Positions 4,985-44,420 of a DNA stretch of 64,000 bases are shown here, in pieces. Each line of letters starts with the position of its first letter. The first letter of the stretch is position 1. The notes below the pieces were generated by a model. It had not been told where the DNA came from, searched no databases, and saw only the letters and a list, made by a program, of their open reading frames with translations. The position numbers were made by a program, and so were the translations under genes. Source of the stretch: Paramoeba atlantica (lineage: Eukaryota > Protista > Discosea); the NCBI GenBank assembly GCA_977017575.1, contig CDRNVI010000003.1, positions 558,001 to 622,000 on the forward strand. The letters are read 5' to 3'.

Positions 4985-5415
4985 GCGAACTGAAGTTCTG
5001 CCAAAAAGAAGAATATCGAATTGGGAAAGACGCGAACAGGGCGTTATAAACTACAATTCCTGAATACAGTAGGAATCTAAAATAATATGTAATCGTGAAT
5101 CTATGATATTGATATCAGGGGTGGGGTGCTTATGTCAGTCTGATAAAGAGGAGTAATACAGTAAAAGTCACTCTTCTGAGGATGGACAGTTGCACATTGC
5201 CGCGTAAAAAAGCCTTTTTTCGTGAATTTTCGTCGCTATTCTCAGAATTGACGTTGGCAGCAGCTTTTTCAGAAAAAATTGAACCATTCTCATTTTTCCT
5301 TATCATCCTTTTTTCGAATGAAAATAGTTGCAAAAAACAACCTTTTGTCTTTATTATTTAAAATATAACATCACCAGAGAATTTCAACATAGTCTTGACC
5401 AATGGGTTACGCCAA

Positions 5416-13154: not shown

Positions 13155-13290
13155 TACAAGTAGAAAGACAGGGAAAAAGAGAGAGCTGCGTTCAACAAAG
13201 AAGACACAAAATGTACAAGAAAGCCCAGCAAATCAGAAAGAAATTATAGGTGAAAACGGGGAGCTTTGCCCCTAAATGACATTATCACGG

Positions 13291-13358
13291 ACTTCATAAA
13301 CACGCTTGTTACCGGTCCCGGCGTCGTCGCGAGTTGCGACGAAGTGTGAGGGAGAAGT
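13291..13358 (+). ncRNA. Twister ribozyme-like sequence (type P5), probably inactivated by a 6-nt deletion
   Basis: P1 ACTTC/GAAGT, TAA, P2 ACAC/GTGT, GC, CCGG-TCCC-GG (AAGCCC missing relative to the 41.7 kb copy), P5 hairpin TCGTCGC/GCGACGA, GAGGG. Confidence 0.75.
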
Positions 13359-14251
13359 ATTCACCACGTAGATGACATGTATTGTATAACAAGGTAACCT
13401 TCTTATAAATAAAACTGTTGGAGAAACGATCGAACAATGCAGACGAAGAGGAAAGTCTCTCCCATGATCTGGAATGCTCTGGCGAAGATGAAGAAAGGTC
13501 AGTTGACGAAGAAAGTTCTGAAAGTGATGAAGATAAACGTGATAAACAAATCGATGTACTCTTTACTTCACGCGGGTGTATTTCAACTGGCACGGAGCGA
13601 CATCTCAAATATTTCGTTGCCCAACACGATGACCATTCCATTTATCATTTCAACAATAAAATGTAATAAGCTGTTATCTGCAATGCATGACATGTTATAT
13701 ATCATATCATCTTACTTTCTTGCGCAACGTTGATGCATTGAACTTCATCCGTAGATCACGATCCACCAAAATAGGGCGCCTCAATGACCTGCATTCGATT
13801 AACGTCCCCAACAATAATCTGGCAATCCAATTGTACATAGCTAGACAACGATTCAAATCCGGACAAGGCGTAGTTACTGCAGTAGTGTACACCAGTACTG
13901 GTAGTACAACTACTACAGTACTTTTTTGCCCTTCTTGATAGTTTTCTTCAATGATCGAGGGCAGAACGGTAGTTGGGTAAATTCCGAAATTATGCGTTTC
14001 TAAACGCAACGTGTTTTTATATGCATCTACATGTATAACTAGTTTACAAATATGCATGGTCTGTACAAATAGTATACATGATCTGTTGAATGGACTAAAA
14101 CTAAAGTATGTGACGTCGAGAATTGACGCCAATCTGAATGAAACGTATAATGTCACATTTTTCATGTACTCTCTTATTTAATCCGTAATAGAGAAAACAC
14201 AGACAATTCGTTATTTTAAGGGTTAGGGCTGATTCGAATCGTCAGGTATTT

Positions 14252-34109: not shown

Positions 34110-35765
34110 TCACACAGAAGCCACTGCCTCATCTTTGGTCGTGTGACAGGTGTGGCACCATGGCCTCCACGAGTAATTAAAACTTCCACACGTGGAACAC
34201 ATAAATTGTCCCGGCTGTAGCGGCTCCGTGTCACCCTCGATCATCGCCCTGCGTGTTCCACAAAAGAGACAAAGCATACGAGCCCCATAGTTCACCTCGC
34301 TACAGCACTCACACACGAAATTCCCCCTCCGAGAGAAGCTCCTCACCACGGAGCAGGTCGCGTCCCGGGCCGCACCGCATACCCAACACATTTTCCTCTT
34401 GTTCGGGTTGATCGTTGCGCACTGGCCACACTTCCAGTCCCCGAGCGAGGCACTCTCCCACGAGCGGCTCTCCGCCACTTTGTGTACGTGATGCGGGTCC
34501 GTGTATACCGTGCTACAGTGCGCACACACCTGGGTCTCCTCCCGAAAGTTAATCCGCTCACATTTCACACACAACCAGTCCCCCGGCACAGCCTCCGCGA
34601 GCGTCCTCCCGAGGTTATACGGTATCCTCGGCGTGTCCTCCCCCCGCTCTTTCGCACACATAAAACACTTTCTCCTTTGCCGGTAATTCGCCACCCCACA
34701 CCCCTCACAACACCAGTCCCCCGGCCACGCCTCAAACCCCTCCCCCAACCCCACCACCACCTCTTTCCCTCCCCCCTCCCCCCTCCCTTTCCCACACCTC
34801 ACACACCCCTTCCGCTGCCCCCCCACATTATTCCACCCACACCCCCCACAGTTCCAGTCCCCCCCCCTCGGCCCCCCCTCCCTCCCCTCCACCATCTCCA
34901 CCCGCTCACTCACCCCACTCCCACACCGCACACAGCCCACCCGGTACCCATAATTCCACACCTCACACTGCTCACACCTCCAATCCCCCCGCCTACTCCC
35001 CGCCCGCACGTGCGCCGGTCCCGCCCCCTCCGGCCGCCCCGCCTCACACTTAATGCAACACACCCGCATGCTGAAGTTCAGCACCCCGCACTGGGGGCAG
35101 TAGAACTCCCCCTCCTTCAGCTCGGGCAGCGGGATCACCCTACTCCCCACGACCGCCCCCTCCCCCCCCCTCTCCCGCGGGGCCTCACACCGGTAGCACC
35201 CCCCCCGCGCCTTGAAGTTCCACAGCGCGCAGTGGGTGCACTGCCAGTCCCCGGGGCGGGGGGCCATCGCCGCCGCGGGGCGCCACGGGGAGCCGTCGGG
35301 GTGGGCCCAGCGCAGGCAGCCCGGGGCGAGGGGGGTGGCGCACACGTAGCACGCCGTGCGGGTCTTGAAGTTCGACCCCTCGCAGACGGGGCAGAGCCAG
35401 TCCCCGGGGAGCCGCGGGGGGTCGCGGTCGGGGGGGGGCCGGGAGGGGGGGCCACCACGACGCCGGCGGGTCCCGCGGAGGCGACCGGGGGGGTGGTGGG
35501 GCTGGAGCTCACCGAATTCATCGAATTGGGGACGACGGCGGGGGGAGGGACGGAAGGGGGAGGGGGGGTAGGGGTTGCGGTTGGAGGCGTCGTCATCGTA
35601 GGTGGGGGGGTGGTGGTGGTGATAGGGGGAGGGGGGTGGGGGGGTGGAGGGGGAGGAAGAGGGGTTGGTGGAGGGGGAGAATTGTACCATGGGGGTACGG
35701 TAGAGAGAGGGGAGAGGGCATGGGGGGGAGGGGGGGAGACGAAAGGTGCGAAAGAGGATACGCAT
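34110..35765 (-). CDS. RanBP2-type zinc-finger array protein (10 fingers)
   Basis: Ten GDWxCxxCxxxNxxxRxxCxxC units counted by eye; Pro/Arg-rich N-terminus. Confidence 0.9.
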   Translation of the reverse strand: MRILFRTFRLPPSPPCPLPSLYRTPMVQFSPSTNPSSSPSTPPPPSPYHHHHPPTYDDDASNRNPYPPSPFRPSPRRRPQFDEFGELQPHHPPGRLRGTRRRRGGPPSRPPPDRDPPRLPGDWLCPVCEGSNFKTRTACYVCATPLAPGCLRWAHPDGSPWRPAAAMAPRPGDWQCTHCALWNFKARGGCYRCEAPRERGGEGAVVGSRVIPLPELKEGEFYCPQCGVLNFSMRVCCIKCEAGRPEGAGPAHVRAGSRRGDWRCEQCEVWNYGYRVGCVRCGSGVSERVEMVEGREGGPRGGDWNCGGCGWNNVGGQRKGCVRCGKGRGEGGGKEVVVGLGEGFEAWPGDWCCEGCGVANYRQRRKCFMCAKERGEDTPRIPYNLGRTLAEAVPGDWLCVKCERINFREETQVCAHCSTVYTDPHHVHKVAESRSWESASLGDWKCGQCATINPNKRKMCWVCGAARDATCSVVRSFSRRGNFVCECCSEVNYGARMLCLFCGTRRAMIEGDTEPLQPGQFMCSTCGSFNYSWRPWCHTCHTTKDEAVASV

Positions 35766-36244: not shown

Positions 36245-39200
36245 TTATGCAGCAATGGTCACTGAAGTGGGATCGGCGTCACTCGAACTGCATACTTCAG
36301 TTGGAGCCTCACCATCTTCGTTCCAAAACTCGGAGCTTGGTTGGCTTTGTGCTTCCTCTCCCCATCGATTGTGGCATACGTAGCAGTAGGTTCTCCAAGA
36401 ATAGTTCAGCGTACCACAGAGATGGCATGGAACGGGCTTCTTCTTTACGGTGGATTCGTACAAGGATGTTTTGGGTTTGGGGGATGTACGACGCATGTGG
36501 CAGCTCATACATATGGTGCGGTAGGCGTAGTTCTCCGCATCACACTTTGCACAATGCCAATCTGAATTATGGGGGTACATTCGCGACACAGATGAGGTGC
36601 TGCACGCGTTACATGTAGTGGTTTCATTTTTATTGATAGTCCCACATTTACATAGCCAACTGTTCGAGTCGCTGGACTTCACATCCGGAACAATCATCGC
36701 TGTATGGTCCTTTTCTTTTGTACACGAGTGACACTTCTTGTCGTCTTTTTTATTGTAATTTCGACACGAGAGGCATTTCCAGTCACCCGGAACGAAGTTC
36801 AGTGACCCCGTCGGGTTAAGTTTCAAGTCGCAGGCATCACAATAGGGGTGGTGACGAAAATTTGTTGCCTCACAAGCGACACATTTCCAGTGATCAGCTG
36901 GATGTACGATATTCACCTCTTTCTTCTTGTTACCGCAGCGCACGCAATCGTTTCGTTTCGAAAAGTTCATAACGTTGCATTCTGCACAAATCCATTCCTT
37001 ATTCCGAAGCGCCAAATTGATAATCTCACAATGCTCTGTTTTTTTAGCGCTGCAACGATAGCACGACGACCGGACACGAAAATTTATTGTAAGGCATTCG
37101 CCACACTTCCAATCGCCGTTCAGAATTTTAAACTCAACAAGTTGACACTTGTCATCAAGTGCACGTTGACACCACACGCATACGGCTGACTTGGCATGAT
37201 TCATTTTATCGCAGCCCGCACATTTCCAGTCTCCATAAAAGCTATCCTCCCAACTTAAAGGGGGGACAACGTAGCATTCGTTCGTTTGGCTGGAACTACA
37301 AGAAACACAAAGAGATCTCGCTCGAAAGTTGAGCTTCCTGCAATTCTGACAATACCAATCTCCAGGGGCCTCGACTTTCTTGAATTCGTTTTCCTCCGCA
37401 CCTTGGACGACTAGACACGTATCAGTTTTGCCAGATTGGCATTGAATGCACTTAATTCTTTTAGAAAAGTTTAAAGTTGAGCATTTTTCACAGGTCCAGT
37501 TGCCTACTTTCCAACGTGATTCTGGGATAGAAGCACATTCTGGGCTTCTAGGGGCTTGACAGCCAAAACAGTTTTCCCTATTTCCGTAGTTTGCGCAGCG
37601 GCACTGTGAACAAAACCAATCTCCATGCCTTCTAGGAGTTTCATTTATTTCTTCGCACTCCGAATTTTTTTCAGACTTGCAGTTATAGCAGGTGGATCTA
37701 CTCCGAAGATTCATCATCTTGCAGACTGCACATTTCCAGTCGCCTTGCATTGCTTCAATTTCTACAATTTGAGAATCCGGGCTTTTGACTTTGTTACACC
37801 ATTGACAGGAAGCATCCCATGATAAGTTCATAAGTTGACAGGAATTGCACTTCCAATCTCCGAAAAAGCTATCTTCCCATAGTCTTGCAGGTACAATCGC
37901 ACATTCAAGGTTTTTCTTTTCTTTGCATTTGACACAAGAACTACGTTCCCGCTTGTTATGGCTCTGACACTGCCTACATATCCAGTCTCCTGGAAGTAAA
38001 ATACCGCTGTAGACTTCTCTCATTTTTCTCATTCCAAAAGCGATAGGGCAGTGAGCAGTTCTCGCACTTCTGCACTGCATACAAAGTTGTCTGTGCGCGA
38101 AATTTAACTTTGAACAATGCTGACAAAGCCAATCACCAATCTGGGAGAGAGCAGGAATCTCTGTTTTCGCTGTATCGTCTTTTGGCTTTTTACACTGCGC
38201 ACATTCGTTCGACATGTGAAAAAAATAATTCAGGGCATGACAATAACCACAGGTCCAGTCTCCAGGCTTATACTCACCTTTCATTTCATGGCATGAAGCA
38301 TCTTTTGGAGAAGAACAGGTAACACAAGCACTGTTGCACCGGTAGTTATATGCTTTGCATTGACTGCACTTCCAATCCCCTTGTAAGACCTGTACTTCAA
38401 CGATTTGGCAATCTGTTTTCTTCGCTTCGGAACACCACACACACATAGTACGTTGTAAAGGGTTCATTTGGTCACACGCCCGACAGTGCCAGTCGCCATA
38501 TCGACTCTCCTCCCATGATTTGGCAGGGATAACGGTGCAATCTGGAAGGCGAGGGACATCACAACTTCTACAGCTCACAAAGGAGGGTGACGACGTCTTC
38601 TCGCATGTTTTACATACCCAATCACCGGGTAGCGCTCCATTATCTCCTACTGATCTTGGAACTCTGCCTTCCGTCCGTAAAGTTTGACAAGAGCTGTCCT
38701 TTGTGTACAGACAACGAAGGCATTCCATTCGAGCGCCAAAGTTAACGATTTTGCATTTTGAGCAAACCCAATCACCAGGAAAAAGAACTTTGGGATTAGA
38801 GACATCATTTTGCGCACAGGAAGGGTCTTTTTCTTTTCCACATTTCGTGCATTTCGTTTCGGTACCAAAATTAATGCGTTCACACGAGCATTGCCAATCT
38901 CCCGGTCGTCCCTCCTGAAGAGATCGAGGAAGAATGCTTTCACAATGGGGTGATTTGGCTTCTGAGCAACGAATGCAAATGTCTCTTGACGAAAAATTAA
39001 TCTCTTTACAGTGAACACAAATCCAATCCCCACGTTTAGCCTCAGTGGAAGATATGGCACGCAGAGGTCGTACCGTGGGGGCCAGTTCGGTCAATATTCT
39101 GGCTTCATCGGACTTCGAAGAAAGACACCTGATACAGGACGTTCGCCGCGCATTGTTTGCTTCCTTGCAAGTAGTACATTCCCAATCTCCAAGGCGCGAT

Positions 39201-41263
39201 AGCTCAAAAGGTCTTCGAGGAGGTCCGTACTCCTTGACGCGACAGTCATCCGTTTTTTCTTTCTGGCATTCCGTACACTTTTCGGTACTGCGGAAATTGA
39301 CCGCTTGGCAGGAAGCACATTCCCAGTCGCCTCCTCTTGCGTGTATCACGAATTCGCGCTTGATAATACGACACGTATCCGTCTTCTTAAAGGTACAACC
39401 AAAACATGTCTCGCGACTGCGACGGTTGCATGTGAAACATGTGCAACAAATCCAGTCCCCAGGCATCTCCTGTAGACGCTTTCGTGGCGTCAAAATATCT
39501 GCTGTTGCCTCAGTTATGACTTCACAGGTCTCACTACGAGGTTCTCTGCAGCCAAAGCAGGTTATCATCTGAGAGGAAAAGTTTAACAGAGAACATTTTG
39601 AACAGATCCAATCTCCAACTCTGGTTTTTCCTGGAGGACTCGTCGCTCCTTCAATCGTTATACATTCGTCTGTTTTCGTTGTTGTGCATTTAATACACGA
39701 CGTGCGAACTGCAAAATTACTTAGTCCGCAACTTTGGCAGATCCAATCACCGGGAGATGCTGCGACAACATCCTTGTAAGGGACCGTCTCGACCTCTATA
39801 CCTTTCGCTGCGTAGCACTTGATACAATTAGGACGATTGCGATAATTCAAAGTGGTGCAAGTTGCACAGCGCCAATCCCCCGCCCGAAGACGTTTCCTGC
39901 CAAGCGGCTGTCCAAGAACTGCAGGACGAATTTCTTTACAGCCAAAGCACTCCGTGCGCTCTGAAAAATTTACTGTCTCACACTTCGGACAAACATATTG
40001 CCCAGGTCGCAAAGCAACTACTTCACAATCCGATGATTTGGTTTCGTTACACGCTACGCATGTTTCTCGAGCTTTGAAATTCATTGACCCGCATTTGTTA
40101 CATTTCCAGTCACCGTATCTGTAGCGAATCGCGCGCTTCACGATGATGATGCAATTTTCTGTGTGTTCCGCATTGCAGTTGACGCACAAATTCTTGTCGT
40201 GTGGATTCACAAATTTGCACGACTCGCAAATCCAGTCGTTTGCAGCACAATCTGCGTCCGTTATAGTTTTGCAGGTTTCGTCACGTGTGTACTCGCATTT
40301 AATACATATAGCTCGGCTTCGAAAATTCAAAGTTTCACACTGGGAGCAATTCCAATCGCCGGGACTGCCTTTACGCTGGGGTACGTCCGACACAATCTCG
40401 CATGACTCATCTCGGGGTCGCGAACATGACTCACACTGCTCAGCGCGCATTCTGTTTATAAACTTACAATCAGAGCAGTACCAATCACCAGGGCGTGCTC
40501 TTCGAGGAACAACTGGACCCGCAGAGCTTGGACGTGGCTCACTGCATCGCCTGCATTGCTCATACTCACCGAAGTTGAACGACTTACAGTTTTCGCAGAC
40601 GAATTGTCCTTTTTTCAAAAAGCTCGGTTGAATTTTTGCTGCATCGATTGTCCAGGGCGCAGTGCAGCGCACGCATAAATCCCGTGAGGCCCAATTCTCG
40701 AACTGACATTGTACACAAGTCCAGTCACCAGGAACTGGTCGACGCTCCGCCGGTGGCTTCCACGGAGTTCCATCCGGATGACTCCAACGCGGCGCGTCCT
40801 CGGCTATTGGAGCAAAGCACTGCTTACATTCCATGTTTCTGCAAAAATTTACCATTTCACACTGTTGACACAACCAGTCTCCCGGTTTGGGCTCCGGGGC
40901 AAGCCGCTGCATTCGTCCCCGACCACGTCCTCTGCCACGTCCCCGACCTCCGCGCCCTCGACCGCCCGACCTTCTGCTTAAACTTTCACCAAACTCATCG
41001 TACGTTCGATTTGCACCCCGGCCGCGCCGTCTATCGTACGTAGTGGAAGCGTACTGATCATTTTCTCCTTGAGAAGAATTGTCCTGGTAATAACTCCGAC
41101 CTGAAAAGTGGTATACAGCGACAGTATCCGCTTGCAAGCACGTCTCGTGCAGTTGCTTTCTCGAGAAACTGAAAGTAGGAGGCGATGCTTTTCCAATGTG
41201 ATATTGGAACAAGTCGCGTGAAGCGCCTTTTTGCTTCAACAACACTGCGTAAAAACGGTGCAT
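36245..41263 (-). CDS. Giant RanBP2-type zinc-finger array protein (36 fingers, 1672 aa) with RGG segment
   Basis: 36 W-x-C-x2-C-x3-N-x5-C-x2-C-like units counted by eye; RGRGG stretch; shares DEFGE and W-x-HPDG-x-PW motifs and a terminal NYSWR finger with 34110-35765. Confidence 0.92.
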   Translation of the reverse strand: MHRFYAVLLKQKGASRDLFQYHIGKASPPTFSFSRKQLHETCLQADTVAVYHFSGRSYYQDNSSQGENDQYASTTYDRRRGRGANRTYDEFGESLSRRSGGRGRGGRGRGRGRGRGRMQRLAPEPKPGDWLCQQCEMVNFCRNMECKQCFAPIAEDAPRWSHPDGTPWKPPAERRPVPGDWTCVQCQFENWASRDLCVRCTAPWTIDAAKIQPSFLKKGQFVCENCKSFNFGEYEQCRRCSEPRPSSAGPVVPRRARPGDWYCSDCKFINRMRAEQCESCSRPRDESCEIVSDVPQRKGSPGDWNCSQCETLNFRSRAICIKCEYTRDETCKTITDADCAANDWICESCKFVNPHDKNLCVNCNAEHTENCIIIVKRAIRYRYGDWKCNKCGSMNFKARETCVACNETKSSDCEVVALRPGQYVCPKCETVNFSERTECFGCKEIRPAVLGQPLGRKRLRAGDWRCATCTTLNYRNRPNCIKCYAAKGIEVETVPYKDVVAASPGDWICQSCGLSNFAVRTSCIKCTTTKTDECITIEGATSPPGKTRVGDWICSKCSLLNFSSQMITCFGCREPRSETCEVITEATADILTPRKRLQEMPGDWICCTCFTCNRRSRETCFGCTFKKTDTCRIIKREFVIHARGGDWECASCQAVNFRSTEKCTECQKEKTDDCRVKEYGPPRRPFELSRLGDWECTTCKEANNARRTSCIRCLSSKSDEARILTELAPTVRPLRAISSTEAKRGDWICVHCKEINFSSRDICIRCSEAKSPHCESILPRSLQEGRPGDWQCSCERINFGTETKCTKCGKEKDPSCAQNDVSNPKVLFPGDWVCSKCKIVNFGARMECLRCLYTKDSSCQTLRTEGRVPRSVGDNGALPGDWVCKTCEKTSSPSFVSCRSCDVPRLPDCTVIPAKSWEESRYGDWHCRACDQMNPLQRTMCVWCSEAKKTDCQIVEVQVLQGDWKCSQCKAYNYRCNSACVTCSSPKDASCHEMKGEYKPGDWTCGYCHALNYFFHMSNECAQCKKPKDDTAKTEIPALSQIGDWLCQHCSKLNFAHRQLCMQCRSARTAHCPIAFGMRKMREVYSGILLPGDWICRQCQSHNKRERSSCVKCKEKKNLECAIVPARLWEDSFFGDWKCNSCQLMNLSWDASCQWCNKVKSPDSQIVEIEAMQGDWKCAVCKMMNLRSRSTCYNCKSEKNSECEEINETPRRHGDWFCSQCRCANYGNRENCFGCQAPRSPECASIPESRWKVGNWTCEKCSTLNFSKRIKCIQCQSGKTDTCLVVQGAEENEFKKVEAPGDWYCQNCRKLNFRARSLCVSCSSSQTNECYVVPPLSWEDSFYGDWKCAGCDKMNHAKSAVCVWCQRALDDKCQLVEFKILNGDWKCGECLTINFRVRSSCYRCSAKKTEHCEIINLALRNKEWICAECNVMNFSKRNDCVRCGNKKKEVNIVHPADHWKCVACEATNFRHHPYCDACDLKLNPTGSLNFVPGDWKCLSCRNYNKKDDKKCHSCTKEKDHTAMIVPDVKSSDSNSWLCKCGTINKNETTTCNACSTSSVSRMYPHNSDWHCAKCDAENYAYRTICMSCHMRRTSPKPKTSLYESTVKKKPVPCHLCGTLNYSWRTYCYVCHNRWGEEAQSQPSSEFWNEDGEAPTEVCSSSDADPTSVTIAA

Positions 41264-41366
41264 TTGGGTAGAAAGTTACAATATTTCACTAGAATACTTC
41301 ACTCAGGGGGGAAATAAGGTGTGATAGTTTGCGATTGTAGATGTGTACTAATGTTGTTGTATAATA

Positions 41367-41548
41367 TTGTACCCCCCGTTTAAGCGCACCTCGTTTTTCG
41401 TGAAAAGTGCGCTTAAACGGGGGTCTGAATCAGTACACAAAAAAAACATTGGCGCCGCTTAGCGGCGCCGGAGACTTCACCTCAACTCTGTGTGCGCTTA
41501 AACGGGGGGTCTGACCTTACGGGTGCACTTAAGGGGAGGGGGGGACGG
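41367..41548. mobile_element. pogo-related MITE
   Basis: TA|TTGTACCCCCCGTTTAAGCGCAC ... GTGCACTTAAGGGGAGGGGGGGACGG|TA; internal GTGCGCTTAAACGGGG repeats; matches the pogo end at 7046-7070. Confidence 0.65.
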
Positions 41549-41716
41549 TACATTAAAAATAAAATGTGATTATTCTTTTTAATTTCTTTTTAATTTTGGA
41601 CCACCGTAGCCCCCTTCTATATCCTTTTCTTCTAATATAAACCCTCCGTCACGAATAAGTGACCACAGGCTAAAATCTGTGTTGAGGGGGGTATGGGGGT
41701 ATACCACATTATCACT

Positions 41717-41787
41717 TCTTCGTAAACACGCTTGTTACCAGTCCCAAGCCCGGCACCGCCATATTCGGCGGAGTGTGAGGGTAAAGA
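41717..41787 (+). ncRNA. Twister ribozyme-like sequence (type P5), near-intact
   Basis: TAA 41723-25, P2 ACAC/GTGT, GC 41730-31, P4 CCAG/CCGG, loop TCCCAAGC 41742-49, P5 CCGCC/GGCGG, GAGGG 41777-81. The core GTCCCAAGCCCGG matches the rice twister core as I recall it. Confidence 0.85.
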
Positions 41788-41959
41788 TTTCAATACATCT
41801 ATAGCACGATTATAAACTTAAGAATATAATTGAACTACTTCTTTCTAGTATCCAGTAGAACTACTACATTTAGCTCCATTTAACTAAACAATCTTACACG
41901 CCTGCAAATGTCAGGCATCAATTGAATTCACTTGGTCCCGGCCTGGCAATGCCCATTCT

Positions 41960-43348
41960 CTGTAACGAGGCCCATGGGCTCCGTACCCTTCGGGGTACCA
42001 CCGCCCCAGCATTCGTGCTGGGAGGCCCATGGGCTCCGTGTCCTTCGGGGCACACTTGCCGTTGCATTTATTCATCCTCTGTAACGAGGCCCATGGGCTC
42101 CGTACCCTTCGGCGTACAACCGCCCCAGCATTCGTGCTGAGAGGCCCATGGGCTCCGTACCCTTCGGGGTACCACCGCCCCAGCATTCGTGCTGGGAGGC
42201 CCATGGGCTCCGTACCCTTCGGGGCACACTTGCCGTTGCGTTTATATATTCATCCTCTGTAACGAGGCCCATGGGTTCCGTACCCTTCGGGGTACCACCG
42301 CTCCAGCATACGTGCCCCAGCATTCGTTGCGTTTATTCATCCTCTGTAACGAGGCTCATGGGCTCCGTACCCTTCGGGGTACCACCGCCCCAGCATTCGT
42401 GCTGAGAGGCCCATGGGCTCCGTACCCTTCGGGGTACCACCGCCCCAGCATTCGTGCTGGGAGGCCCATGGGCTCCGTACCCTTCGGGGCACACTTGCCG
42501 TTGCGTTTATATATTCATCCTCTGTAACGAGGCCCATGAGCTCCGTACCCTTCGGGGTACCACCGCCCCAGCATTCGTGCTGAGAGGCCCATGGGCTCCG
42601 TACCCTTCGGGGTACCACCGCCCCAGCATTCGTGCTGGGAGGCCCATGGGCTCCGTGTCCTTCGGGGCACGCTTGCCGTTGCGTTTATATATTCATCCTC
42701 TGTAACGAGGCCCATGGGCTCCGTACCCTTCGGGGTACCACCGCCCCAGCATTCGTGCTGGGGGGCCCATGTGCTCCGTGTCCTTCAGGGCACACTTGCC
42801 GTTGCGTTTATATATTCATCCTCTGTAACGAGGCCCATGGGCTCCGTACCCTTCGGGGTACCACCGCCCCAGCATTCGTGCTGGGGGGCCCATGTGCTCC
42901 GTGTCCTTCGGGGCACACTTGCCGTTGCATTTATTCATCCTCTGTAACGAGGCCCATGGGCTCCGTACCCTTCGGGGTACCACCGCCCCAGCATTCGTGC
43001 CCCAGCATTCGTTGCGTTTATTCATTCTCTGTAACGAGGCCCATGGGCTCCGTACCCTTCGGGGCACACTTGCCGTTGCGTTTATATATTCATCCTCTGT
43101 AACGAGGCCCATGGGTTCCGTACCCTTCGGGGTACCACCGCCCCAGCATACGTGCCCCAGCATTCGTTGCGTTTATTCATCCTCTGTAACGAGGCCCATG
43201 GGCTCCGTACCCTTCGGGGTACCACCGCCCCAGCATTCGTGCTGAGAGGCCCATGGGCTCCGTACCCTTCGGGGTACCACCGCCCCAGCATTCGTGCTGG
43301 GAGGCCCATGGGCTCCGCGTCCTTCGGGGCACACTTGCCGTTGCATTT
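41960..43348 (+). repeat. Mosaic tandem array: 22 copies of a ~29-bp hairpin core with three alternative spacer types
   Basis: Core GAGGCCCATGGGCTCCGT(AC/GT)CCTTCGGGG at 41967, 42022, 42086, 42141, 42196, 42264, 42351, 42406, 42461, 42529, 42584, 42639, 42707, 42762, 42830, 42885, 42949, 43036, 43104, 43191, 43246 and 43301; periods 55, 64/68 and 87 bp. Confidence 0.95.
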
Positions 43349-44070
43349 GCGCTATACATCTTCCTCTCCAGCATGTTTTTTCAATGAAGTGAAAACAGAA
43401 TAAAAACAGAAGGGAGAGGGTGGGAAGTTGTGAGCTGGGAAGTTGTGTGTGCTATGACATGCCTGGCACCGGTCAAAGTAAAAGACTTTTGCAGAAGTCC
43501 TTTTTTGACCACCAACCTCTTAATATCCATTCGTTGATTCCGAACGGGAGTTAGTTATCACCAATAACGTTAGTTATCACCAATTTACAGATCCATGATC
43601 ACACTACCTAAATACCCCCTATTTCGCGTGCTCGTATACAATGTCCGACAGGACCAACGACCGAATATTTCACAAAAAAATTGACTTTGGTGAATCTTGG
43701 TTATATATTGCCGTTGTACTGCATGGTAAGTTGAAGACCTTGTGCACGAAGGCTAGATAACGGCTAAATATGGTCCTATGTACAACCTTAACCTCGGAAC
43801 AACCGTTTCAGTATAAAGGGTGACCCCTTAAAAACGCCAAAAAACGACGATTTCTGGTGTTTTTTGGGGTAAATTGTATTTTTGCGCCTTTTTCGGTCGT
43901 TTTTTATCGGGGTAACTCCTTATACCAAAATAGAGATTCTTGAAAATGTATGCTGCTGAATCACACTTTCTATACTTCACTGCCATTACATCCACTCACG
44001 AGTGACCTCAGGTGCGGGGCTTGCTTGTAACATAAAAAATGAAAATTGAAAAAAATGGTTAGGTGTTCCA

Positions 44071-44420
44071 CAAAAGTCCTTGACTTATGCAAAAGTCCTT
44101 GACTTATGCAATAGTCCTTGACTTGCAGGTCCTTATCCCAGGACAGCGGTACCTAGTTTAGGTGTCTGGAGGCAAGGCCCAACTGCGAGCGAAGCCCACG
44201 TCTGGAGGCAAAAGCCCCCGTTTGCGAGCAAGGCCCAACTGTGAGCGAAGCCCTGGGACAGAATTATATTTTTTAGCGACCCGCACGCTCCAGTCAGGAA
44301 CCACTGAAATTTAAGCCCTAATTGCACTTCTGTCTTGCACCCGGTGAGGCCTCGGAGCTGGGAGAGGCCCCATACCCCACAACTCCCTCATTTTCGGCAT
44401 AGCAACTCCCTCATTTTCGT
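44071..44420. repeat. Short tandem and interleaved direct repeats
   Basis: 19-bp CAAAAGTCCTTGACTTATG x3 (44071, 44090, 44109); GTCTGGAGGCAA x2; GCAAGGCCCAACTGYGAGCGAAGCCC x2; CAACTCCCTCATTTTCG x2. Confidence 0.85.

Follow-up and report, generated by a model that had tools for sequence, protein, structure and literature searches.

The 64-kb stretch of protist DNA analysed here, called the window throughout, carries long intronless ORFs in same-strand runs. Two of them, at 36245–41263 (− strand, 1672 aa) and 34110–35765 (− strand, 551 aa), are made up for the most part of RanBP2-type zinc fingers, with twelve zinc-finger stretches in the larger one (E 1e-108). Positions 41360–41555 (+ strand) contain a distinct short repeat, in which GTGCGCTTAAACGGGGGGTCTGA motifs occur twice and which recurs at 88–91% identity at no fewer than 20 other loci. 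It lies just upstream of the subject of this study, a candidate twister ribozyme at 41716–41788 that stands at the head of a fragment of a repeated element (41706–43470). The fragment, which we call the window copy, lies between genes, on the other strand from the flanking long ORFs. Its parts are listed below.

41706–41715, + strand: first 10 nt of the element, ACATTATCAC
41716–41722 with 41782–41788, + strand: helix P1, whose 7-nt 5′ strand begins one base before the start given in the first-pass annotation
41716–41722, + strand: 5′ strand of P1, UUCUUCG (subfamily consensus UCCUUCG; 41717 is a copy-specific C-to-T change)
41723–41725, + strand: UAA, with the scissile bond predicted between U41723 and A41724 from the Rfam twister-P1 alignment of relatives
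41726–41729 with 41773–41776, + strand: helix P2, ACAC with GUGU, all four pairs formed
41730–41731 with 41748–41749, + strand: T2 pseudoknot, G41730 C41731 with G41748 C41749, intact
41738–41753, + strand: P4 stem-loop, CCAG (41738–41741) with CCGG (41750–41753), loop UCCCAAGC at 41742–41749
41743–41745 and 41748–41749, + strand: contributions of the P4 loop to T1 and T2, respectively
41756–41771, + strand: P5 hairpin, CCGCC-AUAUUC-GGCGG, closed by its loop
41777–41781, + strand: GAGGG, of which GGG (41779–41781) pairs with 41743–41745 to give T1
41782–41788, + strand: 3′ strand of P1, UAAAGAU (consensus UGAAGAU; A41783 is a copy-specific G-to-A change)
41789–41953, + strand: non-repetitive leader, ~92–95% identical to sister copies
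41954–43348, + strand: tandem array of UUCG-capped hairpin units with periods of 55 to 265 nt, part of the element
43349–43470, + strand: final part of the element fragment, up to 43470, where resemblance to sister copies stops

The letters of 41716–41788 are identical to those quoted in the first-pass annotation, which had proposed a near-intact twister at this site, and all the core elements it named are borne out, with the 5′ strand of P1 starting at 41716. Twister core letters are present at 41723–41725, 41730–41731, 41741–41750 (the GUCCCAAGCC loop) and 41777–41781. Both pseudoknots are intact: T1 between the CCC of the loop and GGG, and T2 between GC and GC. P2 is paired at 4/4 positions and P4 at 3/4; P1 has four Watson–Crick pairs, one G·U pair and one C·A mismatch. 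The two defects that had been pointed out at first reading, in P4 and P1, were confirmed as A41740·C41751, the result of a copy-specific G-to-A change at 41740, and C41721·A41783, the result of the change at 41783. The cut site proposed there, U41723/A41724, agrees with the bond predicted by homology with relatives.

Twisters of type P1 constitute Rfam family RF03160 in clan CL00120, with Osa-1-4 as structural reference. The window copy has in common with them the UAA, a 4-bp P2, the GC for T2, the GUCCCAAGCC loop closing P4, the GAGGG for T1 and ends that are open at P1. When intact relatives were aligned to the Rfam type-P1 model, 68/68 model positions were covered; in the same alignment the P3 stem is deleted and an inserted hairpin separates P4 from the 3′ strand of P2. 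The first-pass annotation had called the ribozyme type P5. However, since the RNA ends open at P1 and P5 (41756–41771) is closed by a loop, this type does not apply: the window copy is a predicted type-P1 twister with a P5 hairpin and without P3.

A permissive Rfam scan of 501 nt returned Twister-P5 alone (RF02684; 17 bits, E 0.45). The alignment spans 41680–41753 and is permuted, with its GAGGG borrowed from 41680–41688; taken at face value, the site would be a permuted type-P5 twister using the upstream UGUUGAGGG (41680–41688) and a P1 hairpin at 41690–41705. We give this reading next to no credence. The E value of 0.45 was obtained in just 501 nt, and at least 68 genome sites score equally or higher, so that the match is at background level; its upstream part falls in non-conserved flank, outside the element and in no sister copy; and the supposed P1 would be 17 unpaired nt away from the UAA. 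The type-P5 permutation was rejected on grounds of conservation. Among known twisters P3 occurs in ~78% and P5 in ~1% (PMC6154101). The family in this genome differs from most of them in that P3 is absent and P5 always present, an architecture that is unusual yet still inside the twister class. One lineage also departs from the type-P1 twister in T1, where UCCAAAGC goes with GAUGG, a compensated change.

Scans with curated models gave little at the site itself. An Rfam scan of the whole 64-kb window at the gathering thresholds (67.2 bits for twister-P1 and 37.6 bits for Twister-P5) yielded no match. The Rfam twister-P1 model picks out 56 sites across the genome (45.7 Mb), with a top score of 39.1 bits (E 8.6e-6). 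No copy in the genome attains the gathering score of 67.2 bits, because P3 is missing and P5 is inserted. Intact members of the window subfamily reach ~18 bits with this model, and the closest intact homologue, on contig C19, reaches 37.4 bits with UAA, GC, CCGGUCCCAAGCCCGG and GAGGG all matched. The Rfam twister-P3 model found no match in the whole genome. Thus the covariance-model check that the first-pass annotation had proposed went against the window copy, which stays below significance with curated models and is rescued solely by family evidence.

The family set was assembled from the 56 twister-P1 sites and DNA-level relatives of the window copy, and its alignment holds 39 distinct copies. 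A covariance model built from all 39, window copy included (R1), identified at least 147 genome sites at E ≤ 0.01, with 150 of 9991 candidates scored. For model R2 we left out the subfamily of the window copy and used the remaining 34 copies: the window copy scored 59.5 bits (E 4.7e-16) and an intact sister 68.6 bits, and at E ≤ 1 the 64-kb window contains two sites. Standard pairs fill 87.9% of the pair cells of the 39 copies, as opposed to 38–51% when the partners are slid by 1–3 columns, and in 16 of the 23 pairs both sides have changed. For helices P1, P2 and P4 the figures are 13 pairs, 10 of them changed on both sides, with 86–99% of the cells paired. Compensatory changes are seen in P1, P2, P4, P5 and T1 across the 39 distinct copies: a variable P4 pair appears as GC in 25, AU in 12 and UA in one, and the third T1 pair as CG in 28 and AU in 11 and never unpaired, while T2 is invariant. 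The P5 stem is wholly different in sequence between subfamilies and retains its pairing. Three diverged lineages can be distinguished.

Lineage A: P2 ACAC/GUGU, P4 CCGG/CCGG, P5 hairpin present
Lineage B: P2 CUCC/GGAG, P4 CCAG/CUGG or CCUG/CAGG, P5 hairpin present
Lineage C: P2 CCCU/AGGU, loop UCCAAAGC paired with GAUGG, P5 hairpin present

Single-sequence folding of 41710–41795 was uninformative (z = −0.35), as the pseudoknots of the RNA would lead one to expect. A fortuitous match to the twister consensus would account for the curated Rfam thresholds not being reached, but it is hard to reconcile with 59.5 bits from an independent model, a family of at least 147 sites and compensation in every helix and in T1. 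We rejected it on the strength of that score, the family size and the covariation, and consider its probability negligible. On comparative grounds, 41716–41788 truly belongs to the twister family.

The window contains a second twister.

13290–13359, + strand: twister of lineage A, from another subfamily and with a different P5 (UCGUCGC-GAGU-UGCGACGA)

A clean deletion has removed 6 nt from its P4 loop, and it scores 52.7–55.5 bits with the two models built in this analysis. It has a duplicate at C30:1156894–1156963.

We searched at the DNA level with window positions 41300–44300. Many copies begin their similarity at 41706 and have unrelated flanks upstream; because similarity is lost there, we place the 5′ end of the element at 41706. 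The predicted cut site is thus found 18 nt inside this end, and the piece that predicted cleavage would remove is composed of the first 10 nt, the 5′ strand of P1 and U41723. Sister copies extend to ~2.7 kb (2.73 kb). The number of units in the hairpin array differs among copies, and coding-type relatives have another array in its place. Position 43470 is the point at which an internal complementary region starts in sister copies; in the window an unrelated repeat follows. The stretch 43471–44300 (+ strand) is made up of other repeat families, with matches on contigs C40 and C53 and many short 143-nt units at 92–95%, and may represent an insertion or rearrangement by which the element was truncated. 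We found in the window no inverted copy of the 5′ end within 3 mismatches and no remainder of the element beyond the equivalent of 43470. Since the complementary region and all later parts are absent from the window, the window copy is a 5′ fragment, with neither a coding part nor a complementary region. The first-pass annotation had envisaged an RNA running from the ribozyme into the hairpin array, and this half of its picture gains from the comparison: twister and array are consecutive parts of one repeated element. What did not survive is the notion of a stand-alone or host-built device, as the ribozyme is instead the head of a mobile-element fragment, one of ~150 such heads.

How much function is left in this particular head can be judged from its relatives. 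Compared with the majority of 13 subfamily rows, the 73-nt ribozyme of the window copy has three differences, all of them transitions (C41717T, G41740A and G41783A), and two of the three break pairs, in P4 and in P1. Four sister copies have zero differences from the subfamily majority in the ribozyme. Contigs of three DNA runs, in which the family is collapsed, have G at 41740 and 41783. A locus on contig C30 (C30:1184000–1189400) is 98.9% identical to window positions 40341–44175 with both flanks included and has a shorter hairpin array than the window. This duplicate or allelic locus has 41717T and 41740A in common with the window copy, a G at 41783 and a G-to-A change of its own at 41773, in P2. 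As it carries 41740A together with a different third change, the P4 defect is older than the duplication, after which one more stem change arose in each duplicate. These differing later changes point to neutral decay. The C30 locus also contains a lineage-C twister ~3.6 kb further on (5027–5102 of the extracted locus), without counterpart in the window; the two loci seem to differ here by an insertion.

Folding calculations point the same way for the window copy. The nested twister fold is computed at −10.2 kcal/mol in the window copy and at −20.9 kcal/mol in a sister copy (pseudoknots do not enter these figures); the two pair-breaking transitions thus cost the ribozyme fold about half of its computed stability. 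A competing fold reaches −18.1 kcal/mol in the window copy, whereas the twister fold of the sister is close to its minimum-energy fold. Across the subfamily, 2.6% of positions differ from the majority in the ribozyme, compared with 5.4% in the next 147 nt, which is mild evidence that working copies tend to keep the ribozyme intact.

According to the first-pass annotation, the window copy would still cut between U41723 and A41724 and thereby set the 5′ end of an antisense, plus-strand RNA that runs into the hairpin array. Every invariant core nucleotide and both pseudoknots are indeed in place, P2 and P5 are perfect, P4 keeps 3/4 pairs and P1 its four Watson–Crick pairs and the G·U, and the 59.5 bits were obtained with an independent family model. 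However, both pair-breaking changes are specific to this copy and absent from its sisters, the duplicate locus is gaining further stem changes as expected without selection, the twister fold is ~8 kcal/mol worse than its competitor and the element is truncated. We therefore regard continued activity as rather unlikely. The intergenic position, on the strand opposite to the flanking long ORFs, might also suggest that the host has taken over the ribozyme, for example for processing or terminating antisense transcripts between gene clusters. Such a role would be difficult to square with an element boundary that is independent of the flanks and the same as in ~150 other copies, with the lack of visible constraint (three transitions here, a different third one in the duplicate) and with the rest of the fragment being ordinary element leader; we rate it as very improbable. 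Most likely the window copy would cut poorly or not at all and have no host role. To call it inactive is a thermodynamic guess, and one A·C in a 4-bp P4 together with a weakened P1 need not abolish activity.

In the 2.73-kb sister copy, nothing lies between the reverse complement of nt 2–46 and that of the last 117 nt, and the same layout of the complementary region was found in three copies of 5.7–6.9 kb. Lineage-A elements of 5.7–6.9 kb have the order twister, hairpin array, complementary region and ORFs. The first ORF type, of 347 aa, has no Pfam match; we take it for Gag-like purely by its position. A 293-aa ORF matches Phage_int_SAM_4 and Phage_integrase below the cut-off (E 3e-4 to 9e-3, in two copies that are 60% identical), and its motifs ALRSCE, HTLRH and KHY correspond to the R, HxxR and Y residues of tyrosine recombinases. 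Another ORF, 585 aa long, matches RVT_1 (E 8e-5) and RVT_3, the RNase H profile (E 2e-3), both below the Pfam cut-off; reverse-transcriptase motifs A and B are present, and motif C reads IDN in the copy inspected. Searches of PDB sequences with the recombinase and reverse-transcriptase ORFs returned noise only. Both assignments are tentative, being suggested by weak profile matches and motifs. A copy on contig C2, whose head is 92% identical to that of the window copy, carries Gag-like and recombinase remnants, which ties the window's own subfamily to coding elements.

In sister and coding-type copies the complementary region (1063–1106 on the reverse strand of locus L089 and 1270–1314 in locus L098) matches nt 2–46, that is the whole 5′ half of the twister. 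It is complementary to P1, the cut site, P2, T2 and the 5′ strand of P4. Once transcribed, the region could compete with folding of the ribozyme, and a timing switch is possible.

Twisters were also observed next to ORFs of another kind. At C65:168100–178099, a lineage-C twister (~170–243 of this segment) precedes two ORFs, one of 200 aa and one of 1613 aa, the latter with RVT_1 and zf-RVT matches, a LINE-like layout; at C54:572900–582899, a lineage-A twister lies upstream of an RVT_1/zf-RVT ORF. These two loci had been the first candidates for autonomous partners of the twister element and were set aside: they carry LINE-like reverse-transcriptase ORFs. Twisters in this genome may adjoin non-LTR elements too, or the insertions may be nested. 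A first look at the genome gave 1851 reverse-transcriptase candidates, and all 150 that were listed are above the Pfam cut-off; matches in such numbers indicate a genome very rich in retroelements of several kinds.

Taken together, we estimate a probability of roughly 80% that the window copy is a genuine, mutated twister of type P1 at the head of a family of tyrosine-recombinase retrotransposons, preserved here as a dead-end 5′ fragment. The family displays twister anatomy with covariation, a fixed position of the ribozyme in the element, the complementary region, and recombinase and reverse-transcriptase motifs in relatives. We infer cleavage, co-transcription with host RNA and end repair, in the following order. 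An intact element would be transcribed, probably within a longer transcript. The twister would then fold and cut between U and A 17–18 nt inside the element, and the element RNA would be freed with a 5′-OH end. During cDNA synthesis, before recombinase-mediated integration, the lost terminal nucleotides would be restored with the internal segment as template, which carries, joined and in reverse complement, the last ~120 nt and the first ~45 nt of the element, as in the internal complementary region (ICR) of DIRS type. The end-repair role of this region is proposed by analogy with DIRS models. As a whole, the proposal that DIRS-type retrotransposons of this protist use a twister to free their RNA 17–18 nt inside the 5′ end and rebuild the loss from an internal mirror of the joined ends, with the window copy as a fossil, seems to us slightly better than an even bet.

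The point of interest is the family rather than the window copy. The site in the window is a decaying relic, and neither a host RNA gene nor an active ribozyme should be annotated there without a test. Canonical twisters are very widespread, and in the literature searched a function has been shown only for variants that head one schistosome LINE family. Here the twister class occurs at a fixed place in a different class of retroelement, and its helices have been kept by compensation across three diverged lineages; the fixed place and the compensatory changes are good evidence that the twister is used. If the proposal is true, these would be the first recombinase retrotransposons with ribozyme processing, and canonical twisters would acquire a biological role beyond schistosome LINEs for the first time, a second and independent role for the class. 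Cleavage combined with end repair, if both are true, would explain how promoterless recombinase retrotransposons escape from polycistronic host transcripts.

A precedent for the position of the ribozyme is found in Perere-3 LINEs of Schistosoma mansoni, where twister variants at the 5′ end have been shown to cleave (PMC8501958). As in Perere-3, the twister here stands at the very start of a retrotransposon and is presumed to free the RNA of the element from a longer one. The schistosome ribozyme is carried by a LINE of the RTE type, in which the 5′ strand of P1 comes from the target-site duplication. In the present family, by contrast, the 5′ strand of P1 and 10 more nucleotides lie inside the element, and the carrier in relatives has a putative tyrosine recombinase and an internal copy of the end that would be cut off.

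For the carrier, a close match is provided by DIRS elements, whose internal complementary region matches their joined ends (PMC6681497). The relatives described here resemble DIRS in their candidate Gag-like, recombinase and RT/RNase H ORFs and in an internal segment complementary to their joined 3′ and 5′ ends. Unlike DIRS, they have no long inverted terminal repeats: in self-comparisons of four elements, the ends are complementary to the internal region and not to each other. In the literature searched (mostly outside subscription journals), we found no description of a ribozyme at the head of DIRS elements and no relevant paper on a twister together with a tyrosine recombinase.

The first-pass annotation had considered the genome kinetoplastid-like and stated that it knew of no twister from kinetoplastids; in keeping with this, no paper linking twisters to kinetoplastids or euglenozoans turned up in a literature search that mostly covered journals without subscription. 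The 3′ half of the trypanosomatid spliced leader, searched as an approximate pattern, has no match in the whole genome. VIPER and TATE, the tyrosine-recombinase retroelements of kinetoplastids, belong to the same broad class as the elements described here (PMC6681497), and the hosts of both are presumed to be of one group. VIPER-like elements, compared by description only, differ from the present family in having split direct repeats and no internal complementary region (PMC6681497). A ribozyme is never mentioned in that paper on kinetoplastid recombinase retroelements (PMC6681497).

Small self-cleaving RNAs that act in 5′ processing of retroelement transcripts include the HDV-like ribozymes of R2 and L1Tc and the hammerheads of Penelope-like elements and retrozymes. 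Compared with these systems, the elements described here combine a different class of ribozyme, the twister, with a different class of element, the candidate tyrosine-recombinase retrotransposon.
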